Shown here: one piece after another, positions 3,700 through 10,527 of the stretch
Layout: each line of letters begins with the position of its first letter
Numbering within the stretch: position 1 is the stretch's first letter
Assembly: GCA_009103225.1 (NCBI GenBank)
Contig: RHPI01001043.1
Span: 102,056-166,055, forward strand
Length of the DNA: 64,000 nucleotides
Origin: Chlorokybus atmophyticus
Lineage: Eukaryota > Plantae > Mesostigma and Chlorokybus algae
Reading direction: 5' to 3'
Position numbers and translations under genes: made by a program
The notes under the pieces: generated by a model
The model's database searches: none
Seen by the model: the letters and a program-made list of their open reading frames with translations, nothing else
Told to the model about the DNA's origin: nothing

Positions 3700-4457
3700 G
3701 TGAATCTAACGTGACTCCTTCACTGATGGCTGCAGCATGGCATGCTTATTGTTCCAACAGCAGTAGATATATTGCTTTTGCACTTTGATTCAGTGAGTAA
3801 GGTTGGTAAGCTGTCCTGCGTTTTGTGTATACAATCATGACGACAACAGTGTGTTGGTGCGCAATACCTAACCGTTGGACAAGGCAGTCCTGAAAAGTTT
3901 GTGTCACACCTGCGGCATGAGATGTGCAATGGGCCACATCCCATGGTACATCATCGTGTACACGTCCTAGCCTTCTGTTGGTGCTGAGCTGGAGGATTGC
4001 CTGAGGGAAAACTTTTAGTCTTCACCTTTCCACACCACAGAACTGGATGGGAATTGATTGCATCACATGTTAGGTGGGTACAGCAAGAGTTGTTCTGGTC
4101 ACAATGTCCGTGACTTCCTTGTAAAGTGTTGACCGCAGAGTATATACACTGCTTATGTTTTTATTTGGTCCAGTATCCGCGACATTCTGCACACAAAACT
4201 GCTTGCCATGTCACGACCTGCCTGCATGCAACATCTTGATGGCACAATGAGGGCTTTTTGACAGAGGTGACTACGATATTCGCACTGCTGCTCATGTAAC
4301 CAAAACGTGCCAGCTGGAGCTCTCTGGGAATGGTTTTCCACTGTAGGCGACGTGGCTTGCAACTGGCAACAGCAACTGACCCTGTGATATGCACCTCCAG
4401 CACACGCAGCAGGAACTGCATACACGCGGCGACAACGTACATGCTCCACGGTGACGC

Positions 4458-7210
4458 TTATGGATGGTCATCATAGCCTGAGACCTGCAAGAAGGCCGCA
4501 CAGCCCAATGTTGTGTTCAAGCCAATGACCTTTGTAGCACGCAGAGTGCTTGTCACTGTGTTGCTGATGAATGGCTGTGTGGTTTGGGGAGGAACGGGCA
4601 AAAGTGAGCTGGTTTTACACCATGCGGGCACGTTAGGACCACAAGTGTGCACACCTGCCAACAGGCAGCTACAAAACAGCGGGTTACCTGCAATGCATTC
4701 GTTGACTAGCGCCCGCCTTGGCTACACAGTTGTTGTAGCTTGTGTGGTGTTTACTGCAATCAAGAAGAGAAGGAGCAGTGAGTCGTGCTATGCTATAAAC
4801 TAAAGTTTGCAGGTACACACTTGTGACACTGCATGTTCACGCAGATTGGCATGTGAGAGTTCCCCTTTGCATCTTTTGTACACACTGTGAAGGTGTACAA
4901 AAGTGGGTGTGTTTGAGCAAACACAGGCACTGAGGCAATGACAGTACCTGGTTGCTGTGCTGCAGGTGCTCCGGGTGTAATAGGTGTCACCTGGGATTTA
5001 TCGTCAAGTTGCTGAAGGCCTCGATTTCTCAATAGAAGACGCTTTCCCAGATTATCAAGCATCGGGTTGAAGACAAGACGCGTCTCCACCTCTTTGCTTA
5101 CAAAGAACATAAAGAAGATGATGCCGACAAAGCTCCACGCGCCACCCTGACCGAAGATGACACAACTGATAAGTTCACCACACACGTTGTATCGAGACAA
5201 CACGCTGTGGTCAGCGGATGTAGCTCAACGCACCACGTTGCCAATGATGCCAAAAAGGGGTGCATTGTCGTCTATGTGGAGCGTTCCTTCTGGAGACGCG
5301 TAAAGCCACATGACGAGCGCTTGATTGAAACTCGCTGGAGGTAGGTACGCTCCGGACCTTTGCGTGCCATTATATTGCATCTCGGAGGATGAAATGCTTT
5401 GCACGGAATACAGATTCAACTGAACAGAACAAGAGGAAGATGAGTACGCTCGTCACCATCAGTAACAACACCTTACAACAGCTTGTAACAACCACAAACA
5501 AGAGCGCACCGGCTCTCCCAAACTGATGGCGCCATCCAAGCGTCTCCTCGCAGTTTTTGCAACTGTCACCCTATTGACCTTCCTAACCGGCAGATATGCC
5601 GAGCCTTGTACATCCGTCTGGATGTCATAAAACCACCGATCGCTGCCAACAAACAGGTGTACAACCAAGGATATGAGACATGCTCATGTGTCAGAGATAT
5701 GTCACACAATGTACGTACTCGCGCCTTGATGCTGTCTCAGGCAGGTTTGGGGGCGTGTCTGCAAATGCAACTAACAGATCGGCACCCATGACATCCACAA
5801 AGGTCCCGTTAAACCAGAGGTGGAAGCCGAAGCCTGTTTGGGGATCCATCGGTGGCGTGCTAATGAAGTCATAGATTATGCACCAGTCATCTGGTGCAGA
5901 AGTGGAGTTGCGATAGAAGAATGTGAAGGATAGTTCAGTGGTGGTTTGGATTGTATGATTGGTGAATGCGAGCCCATTCCCAGCCTGACTGCTTGTTACA
6001 TACGAGCATCGTTGCTGCACACGGAGTTTTACAAAAAAATCTGAGAACAGCGTTCACTGGCAATGAAGGCTGACGGGGTCACTCCATGCATGACAGCAAC
6101 CAGCTTATGCACTGTTGAAGCGCGTGTGTGTGCGTGTGTGCTTGCGTGTGCGTGTGTGTGCTGCTACACATCTGTGCACGTCTGTCCGTCTGTGCATGTA
6201 CATACTGACACACACGCACGCATGCATGTCACTATACACGCACCCATGCATGCTCATCCACCTGTTCGCGCGTGCCTTGTGTGAGCCTCACAATGAAGTA
6301 ACAAGTATGCACATACAGTGAATGAGTGAGGTTTGGCTGACCTGCACAAGATTGGCTTCTGGTTTGAAGGGAGGTCCAGGGTACATGCTGGCGGGCTCAC
6401 ACGCGCCTTTGTCAAGTCCGGGTTGTGTAGCCGTTCTTGGGAAGAACCGCGGAAAGATGGTACTGGTGTCCACAGCAATCTGTGCACGAGCATGGTTGAT
6501 ATGTGTCCAATATCTCCTGCTTGCAATGACCATTAAGACCCAACATGCTTGCCTTTCCGTATGAGCACAGCAGAACGCTAGGCAGGGTAATCGCCTCCTC
6601 CCTTGGGATGTTAAATGTAATGGTCACGGAGGGGTCCTTGTAATCACTAATCAACTGCAAGAGCACTACTGTTATTGTGTGCTCTTATAGTGCGCAGCAG
6701 GTAAGCAACACTGAACTGCAGACTTCATGTAGCGCAACCATCGTTAAGCATGGCACTGTGTCATGTAAGCTCAACATGCTTTACAGTGAGCTGCAGTTTG
6801 TTGAACATAAGGGCTCCTTACCTGAACAACAAGGTAAGCGCAGTAGGCTACGAAGGCGACGAGCAGTAGGCCGTATATGAACCAGGCGCGCTTGCGGTGA
6901 TGCTCCTCCACCTCCACCACGTTGATGCCGCCGATAGAGCTCACTGCCGCAAGCGCTTTGGGCAACTGAACAGAGAGCAGATCACACAACAGAATACTTG
7001 TCGACTGAGCGCAACACACCATCCCAGCTCTACACAATAGTGCACAACAACACAGCAACTGCAGTATGGCAGAGCCAAAGCAAATCAGATCTTCTTCTGT
7101 TATGCTCGTGCTGTAAAGCATGCACTGCGTGCCAGGTCAGACACGGGCTTGCTAACAAACCATGTCCTCAGTATATGACAGCAGATCAAGCTCACCTTCT
7201 TCGTTGCCAT
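4458..7210 (-). CDS. Two-transmembrane protein with DEG/ENaC (ASIC/ASC)-like sequence signatures, about 9 exons
   Basis: ATG at 7210. Joined exons: MATKK|LPKALAAVSSIGGINVVEVEEHHRKRAWFIYGLLLVAFVAYCAYLVVQ|LISDYKDPSVTITFNIPREEAITLPSVLLCSYGK|...|...HIDDNAPLFGIIGNV|GGAWSFVGIIFFMFFVSKE...|VSGYDDHP*. TM1 and TM2 flank a large loop. The gene model is well supported; the family call is an inference. Confidence 0.65.
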
Positions 7211-7718
7211 TGCGCCTCAACTCCCTAAAGGCGGATCTGGGTCCCGGCCCACCTCCAGATCGATTGCAAACTGAGCACCTTCCTGACACCTTTCTGTCCT
7301 GCTTGTGCTTAGCTGACCTGCCCTCAGCAGCAATGCCGTCTCACACCACCACTTCAGAAGACAGCTTCAGCTACAGCAACAAGTAAAACAAGCTCGAACA
7401 GATCGACAAGCTTGCACCCTAACCACCTGGCCGCCGCCACCGTCGCTGACAAGCAGTGCTTGTCACATTGTGTTTTTGTCGCTAGGCCTAGGCCTGCATA
7501 TAACACGCGGCTGCGCACAGCAGCACTGTGACTGCTCGTGAGGCTGGTCTAGACTGCCGTGCCACTGCAGTGCCACACTAGCAGCGTTACAACGGATATC
7601 ATCAAGAGCGTTTTGGGCACTGGGCTTCCTGCTTCCATTGGTCCAGATGGTCCGGTTATTGGCATATATGACAGTCTTTATCAGGTAAACTTCTGCTCAG
7701 AGTGCGATCGTGGCAGTC

Positions 7719-10527
<2,809 letters not shown>

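Follow-up and report, generated by a model that had tools for sequence, protein, structure and literature searches.

Does the alga Chlorokybus atmophyticus carry a gene of the DEG/ENaC superfamily, the ASIC- and ENaC-type ion channels that Pfam describes by its ASC profile (PF00858)? The question is raised by a spliced gene on the minus strand of contig RHPI01001043.1 (assembly GCA_009103225.1), within the stretch of 64,000 nucleotides (positions 102,056 to 166,055 of the forward strand) that we analysed as a whole and call the window; all coordinates below are those of the window. Working from the letters alone, an initial annotation had read positions 4458 to 7210 as a candidate ASIC-like channel of a green alga, possibly a divergent plant-lineage member of the family. 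The host at least is as supposed: Chlorokybus belongs to the Streptophyta (Chlorokybophyceae). Channels of the DEG/ENaC type are regarded as essentially animal. Outside the animals, genes of this kind have been described from heterokonts and from Tunicaraptor, a filasterean relative (PMC10507113), a 2022 plant-focused survey reports the family as absent from land plants (PMC12806904), and the Chlorokybus genome paper leaves DEG/ENaC channels unmentioned (PMC7027972). Our literature search for DEG/ENaC channels in Chlorokybus or other streptophytes found no paper.

On balance, we lean towards reading the gene as encoding a very divergent DEG/ENaC-superfamily subunit, devoid of the cysteine-rich thumb and of the G/S-x-S filter, and not a proven member. 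What carries this reading is a match of the N-terminal third of the protein to the ASC profile, the sole family above noise for the gene or its paralogue in our Pfam scans. Since several defining features of the family were looked for and are absent, we class the protein as a related variant and not as a member. Homology would then extend to the remainder of the protein, which may assemble as a trimer and function as a channel.

Protein Topology and Motifs

According to hydropathy, the RNA-supported protein of 414 amino acids has exactly two transmembrane (TM) helices, TM1 (residues 33–56) and TM2 (residues 331–356), around a loop of 274 residues, which agrees with the two helices and large loop of the initial annotation. 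An HHRKR patch lies ahead of TM1 and a K/R-rich segment behind TM2, and these basic flanks outside both helices suggest that both ends of the protein are cytoplasmic. The loop bears four N-x-S/T sequons, of which only N202 is kept in the paralogue (see below), and four cysteines (C83, C114, C136 and C178), all of them conserved there, while Cys in TM1 is not kept.

All the motifs first quoted as resembling DEG/ENaC channels (SSIGGINVV, KRAW, DYKDPSVTITF, LPSVLLCS and the TM2 stretch) are found in the RNA-supported protein. DYKDPSVTITF and LPSVLLCS together correspond to the post-TM1 motif of the family (Y-x-x-y-P...T plus a cysteine-bearing strand) and fall within the stretch aligned by the ASC profile, whereas the TM2 motif, FGIIGNV/GGAWSFVG, spans the joint between exons 7 and 8 (at the slash) and is supported by RNA.

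Match to the ASC Profile

The ASC profile is 455 positions long and has a curated gathering cut-off of 23.6 bits. It was compared with the public model of the gene (P0001, eukprot jgi/Chlat1/1842, 390 amino acids, 100% identical over exon 5) and with that of the paralogue (P0002, Chlat1/5811, scaffold Chrsp4, 422 amino acids); the scores given for our gene are thus those of P0001, in which eight residues of the matched motif are missing, and not those of the 414-residue protein:

P0001, whole: 20.0 bits, E 3.9e-4, residues 13–82 aligned to profile positions 4–72
P0001, residues 1–120: 23.2 bits, E 4.3e-5, aligned region as for whole P0001
P0002, whole: 29.1 bits, E 7e-7, residues 16–99 aligned to profile positions 16–100
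P0002, residues 1–130: 33.0 bits, E 4.6e-8, aligned region as for whole P0002

The alignment is collinear, has almost zero offset and begins at the equivalent N-terminal position, so that the profile independently places the pre-TM1 and post-TM1 motifs in the expected order. Dissected pieces gave 9.6 bits for P0002 1–46 (pre-TM1 and TM1), 14.7 bits for P0002 36–110 (end of TM1 and post-TM1), 30.7 bits for P0002 10–80 and 12.2 bits for P0001 1–57. About two-thirds of the score come from outside the bulk of TM1, which indicates that the match is more than the resemblance of one hydrophobic helix to another, and unrelated membrane families reached only 8–16 bits on the same pieces. A scan of NCBIfam returned only noise (10–16 bits), and single exon pieces matched nothing relevant in Pfam.

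P0001 and P0002 are 49% identical over 355 amino acids (E 1e-125). They share the same architecture, including the four loop cysteines, and long identical blocks such as PPMDPQTGFGFHLWFNGTFVD and DRWFYDIQTDVQG. P0002 differs in lying above the Pfam threshold for ASC, in carrying the PF00858 tag in the database and in having an unrelated C-terminal tail.

Several observations weigh against membership in the family. P0001 scores just below the cut-off, and the match is limited to profile positions 4–100 of 455 (about 85 positions: pre-TM1, TM1 and post-TM1). The TM2 motif is not picked up by the profile: the TM2 part of either paralogue (residues 280–390) has no ASC match at E ≤ 10, nor has the loop alone (P0001 80–330, P0002 90–330), even at E ≤ 10. 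ASIC and ENaC chains in the PDB were recovered neither by sequence nor by a two-sequence profile, which returned only noise-level antibody matches, and the pre-TM1 motif SSIGGINV is absent from the annotated N-terminal end of P0002. The His of the HG motif, the cysteine-rich thumb and the G/S-x-S filter are hallmarks of DEG/ENaC channels. Here, S-I-G-G-I stands at the place of the first, with Gly kept and His replaced by Gly; the 274-residue loop has just four cysteines and no cysteine-rich thumb; and in TM2 no G/S-x-S follows G-N-V-G-G, where the sequence reads A-W-S-F-V-G-I-I-F-F. The initial annotation had already remarked on these three departures, and the RNA-supported sequence agrees with it. 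Finally, no ASC cluster is among the ESM-Atlas neighbours listed for the whole proteins or for the loop, which keeps open a reading in which both paralogues are part of a wider, as yet undescribed set of thumb-less two-TM proteins.

Compared with DEG/ENaC/ASIC channels, the protein is thus alike in its two TM helices, its two ends inside, its large, putatively glycosylated loop, its N-terminal profile match running through the post-TM1 cysteine and the small-residue G-x-x-G-G at the outer end of TM2, a motif of the family that we read here by eye. It is unlike them in its loop (about 275 residues with four cysteines, against about 370 with a cysteine-rich thumb in the family), in having GG for HG, in its TM2 without GAS filter, and in the failure of the profile to recognise either loop or TM2. 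A divergent plant-lineage DEG/ENaC channel, as first proposed, therefore holds in part: ASC is the sole family match and the paralogue passes the threshold, but beyond the N-terminal region the family signal is missing.

Gene Structure and Transcript Support

The gene is a spliced protein-coding gene of the minus strand, with its start ATG at 7210 and an open frame of 414 codons when the exons are joined as in RNA-type contigs; a stop codon lies in frame two codons 5' of this ATG. The transcript comprises ten exons or more, of which nine are coding, and its stop codon is at 4722–4724. Evidence for splicing comes from four public runs that carry one and the same organism label and whose contigs were aligned to positions 4300–7500; the contig kind is a guess (RNA), and all introns are skipped, as in transcript assemblies. 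The X1 contigs are about 99% identical to the window, and one record of 4242 nucleotides spans the gene in the pieces 7196–7500, 6822–6965, 6342–6479, 5719–6014, 5510–5642, 5233–5419, 4948–5145 and 4300–4482, while the exons 6553–6654 and 4686–4753 are supplied by contig joints. The X1 joints are 7196/6965, 6822/6654, 6553/6479, 6342/6014, 5719/5642, 5510/5419, 5233/5145, 4948/4753 and 4686/4482. All introns are GT..AG on the minus strand except 6480–6552, which is GC..AG and whose joint (6553/6479) recurs in X1, X3 and X4. The features of the gene are:

7211–7500, minus strand: 5' untranslated region (UTR), the non-coding part of exon 1 (X1 piece 7196–7500; the contig continues about 84 nucleotides past 7500)
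7196–7210, minus strand: coding part of exon 1, MATKK, start codon 7208–7210 (X1 joint 6965/7196, translation)
6822–6965, minus strand: exon 2, cytoplasmic N-terminal end, SSIGGINVV (6915–6941), HHRKRAW basic patch and most of TM1 (6822–6884) (joints in X1, X3 and X4, hydropathy)
6553–6654, minus strand: exon 3, end of TM1, DYKDPSVTITF (6613–6645), LPSVLLCS (6562–6585) and the first conserved loop cysteine, C83 (joints 6654/6822 and 6479/6553)
6480–6552, minus strand: intron 3, GC-AG, 73 nucleotides, donor GCAAGC (joint in X1, X3 and X4)
6342–6479, minus strand: exon 4, loop residues 88–133 with conserved C114 (joints, translation)
5719–6014, minus strand: exon 5, loop residues 134–232, containing C136 and C178 (both conserved) as well as the block PPMDPQTGFGFHLWFNGTFVD, identical in the paralogue (joints, translation, paralogue comparison)
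5510–5642, minus strand: exon 6, loop, conserved block DRWFYDIQTDVQG (joints, translation, paralogue comparison)
5233–5419, minus strand: exon 7, last part of the loop and beginning of TM2, LFGIIGNV (5233–5257) (joints, hydropathy)
4948–5145, minus strand: exon 8, remaining TM2, GGAWSFVGIIFFMFFVSK (5093–5145), and basic cytoplasmic tail (joints, hydropathy)
4686–4753, minus strand: exon 9, last 10 codons, stop TAG 4722–4724, then 3' UTR (X1 joints 4753/4948 and 4482/4686, translation)
4300–4482, minus strand: exon 10, non-coding in the X1 transcript (X1 record of 4242 nucleotides)

All joints being present in X1 contigs, TM1 and TM2 are connected in one frame, as the hand-made splice model of the initial annotation required. 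Its passage through LPSVLLCS, which the public model skips, is likewise supported by the RNA-type contigs. Its protein of about 370 amino acids was right in being spliced but falls short in size, the RNA-supported model giving 414, and its last coding piece (4458–4487) has to be abandoned: this piece is non-coding in X1, where the coding sequence ends at 4722–4724 and the next exon, from 4482, is 3' UTR.

Contigs X3 and X4 are 90–95% identical to the window and have the same internal joints as X1. In these contigs, joint 6967/7247 attaches exon 2 to another upstream piece with 48 other letters (region 7196–7247), while the end of exon 8 lies at 4956 or 4982 and is followed by different letters (region 4736–4982). 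With such differences in the first exon and downstream of exon 8, both protein ends vary among strains or species; within the genus, neither the first five codons nor the C-terminal tail is conserved. As listed from the contigs, coding differences to the other strains or species amount to 22 synonymous and 10 non-synonymous changes, a ratio that fits purifying selection.

The public gene model at this locus is wrong in two places. First, P0001 is without VLLCSYGK, owing to the missed donor of the GC-AG intron; P0002 has LPSILMCSYGK where P0001 has a gap, which confirms the RNA model. Second, its C-terminal end differs, since its final coding exon (from 4458 or 4461 to 4487) is not used as coding by the X1 transcript. 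The first of these errors matters for classification, as it deletes part of the motif that ties the protein to the ASC family.

Two further observations concern the same region. Below 4300, the X1 contig runs on for about 2.4 kb (spliced length), which may be a very long 3' UTR or a merger with the next gene. Within intron 4, positions 6100–6230 form a GT/GC-rich microsatellite-like stretch of GCGTGTGT-type units, to which some unrelated contigs of the runs align by low complexity, as seen in a joint running back by 42 and in loose ends.

Search for Relatives and Alternative Readings

Relatives beyond the paralogue were sought in several ways. Among 1.84 billion representatives, searched exhaustively by phmmer, exon 5 (98 amino acids) had no match at E ≤ 0.001 other than the protein of the gene itself (P0001), word-index searches with P0001, P0002 and their alignment returned just the two paralogues, and scans of metagenome, prokaryote-genome and viral contigs returned zero relatives. 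In the window, tblastn of P0001 and P0002 revealed no second copy. AlphaFold2 models built on a two-row alignment had mean pLDDT (predicted local distance difference test) values of 37.5 for P0002 and 35.9 for P0001, too low to judge the fold, and Foldseek on the low-confidence P0002 model gave query-normalised TM-scores of 0.05–0.17 to unrelated proteins, which are not meaningful.

Could the protein instead belong to another, poorly described two-TM family with a large loop? Under this hypothesis, it would join the Y80K_N or unnamed clusters of Mucoromycota, ciliates and streptophytes, or else PAC/TMEM206-like proteins; its relation to ASC would be remote or none, the profile match could reflect a shared architecture of the membrane-palm junction or a very deep ancestry, and an anion channel like PAC could be considered. 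The nearest ESM-Atlas cluster of both paralogues is a 417-residue 'Transmembrane protein' of Mucoromycota at 0.96 (222–224 of 256 features), followed for the whole paralogues by ciliate clusters of Y80K_N (PF27811, Pfam 38.1) at 0.88–0.91, so named by cluster label only, and by a PAC/TMEM206 cluster at 0.84–0.85, these scores being leads that come without alignment or E-value; scores below 0.9 are often obtained with shuffled proteins. The loop alone finds the same set of clusters at 0.78–0.84, including a Y80K_N cluster made mostly of Streptophyta. Y80K_N gave no match in our Pfam scans, whose copy may be older than this family, and we found no literature on 'Y80K'. A loop of about 275 residues, with few cysteines and no thumb, is also nearer to PAC than to ASIC, PAC being likewise a thumb-less protein with two TM helices, whose loop is compact and mostly beta. 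At the level of sequence, nothing points to PAC, as TMEM206 (PF15122) has no match at E ≤ 10 in the whole proteins or their parts, and the one link with statistical support leads to ASC. We consider this other affiliation unlikely.

A second possibility is that the gene encodes an unrelated, lineage-specific membrane glycoprotein with two TM helices, for example one of the cell surface or associated with the wall, in which case the ASC match would be due to chance or composition. The failure of the phmmer, word-index and contig searches to find any relative besides the paralogue is what such a protein would lead one to expect, and the ASC match is short, contains a TM helix and stays under the cut-off for this gene. 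Yet the paralogue reaches E 5e-8, over the cut-off and in a collinear, position-for-position alignment; most of the score lies outside the TM core; noise matches on the same pieces reach only 8–16 bits; and the DEG/ENaC family would predict both the overall topology and a G-x-x-G-G where TM2 begins. Chance resemblance thus has a low probability in our view.

P2X receptors are a two-TM trimeric family known from green algae and have ten conserved loop cysteines. A P2X-type ATP-gated subunit, which would be alike in gross topology and size, is very improbable and effectively refuted here, because the P2X-receptor Pfam families have no match at E ≤ 10 in the whole proteins or their parts, no P2X chain of the PDB was matched and the loop has four cysteines instead of ten.

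Neighbouring Genes

Head-to-head with the channel-like gene lies a gene of the plus strand (7559–9836) for a class-V aminotransferase of the cysteine desulfurase (NifS-SufS) type, whose open reading frame (ORF) at 9480–9836 matches Pfam Aminotran_5 with 69 bits. The first exon of this neighbour, which runs from about 7710, is rich in Ala, Ser and Arg and resembles a transit peptide. As the channel-like transcript has its 5' end at about 7584, only some 130 base pairs away from the aminotransferase ORF, the promoter region between the two is probably bidirectional. Elsewhere in the window, a run of N at about 330–430 marks an assembly gap and is seen as X-runs in the ORFs 102–473 and 268–675.

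Proposed Architecture and Implications

If the gene is indeed a divergent relative of the DEG/ENaC channels, its product would be a plasma-membrane-type glycoprotein of 414 residues, with two TM helices and both ends inside, specific to Chlorokybus and accompanied by a single paralogue. It would have retained the N-terminal module of the family, i.e., the pre-TM1 Gly motif, TM1, Y-x-x-P...T and the L-P-S-V-x-x-C-S strand that opens the palm, and perhaps the G-x-x-G-G start of TM2, recognised by eye only, around a compact loop of 274 residues with just two likely disulfides. By analogy with known channels, three such subunits may form a chalice-shaped channel with a pore lined by the TM2 helices. 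As the GAS belt is missing, an ENaC-like selectivity for sodium is unlikely, and the selectivity of the putative pore should differ from that of ENaC or ASIC. Its gating could respond to pH, to osmotic or mechanical stimuli or to a ligand.

More tentatively, the two paralogues may represent a private, compact Chlorokybus branch of the trimeric ASIC/ENaC-type channels, with a new extracellular domain, a pore without GAS belt and, possibly, a sequence-level bridge to two-TM families, either thumb-less and PAC-like or uncharacterised ones of fungi and ciliates; this is a possibility that we regard as rather doubtful for now. If true, it would give the plant lineage a channel with new gating and selectivity.

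Should the more general reading of a divergent, thumb-less relative hold, a transcribed and selected gene in the streptophyte clade that diverged first would show how far the DEG/ENaC fold can be reduced, down to a protein that lacks both thumb and GAS belt and has only two likely disulfides. Being small and tractable, such a subunit would further allow one to ask which features of the family a trimeric pore requires. Moreover, it would bear on the age of the family, which may be ancient in eukaryotes or may have spread among them by gene transfer.

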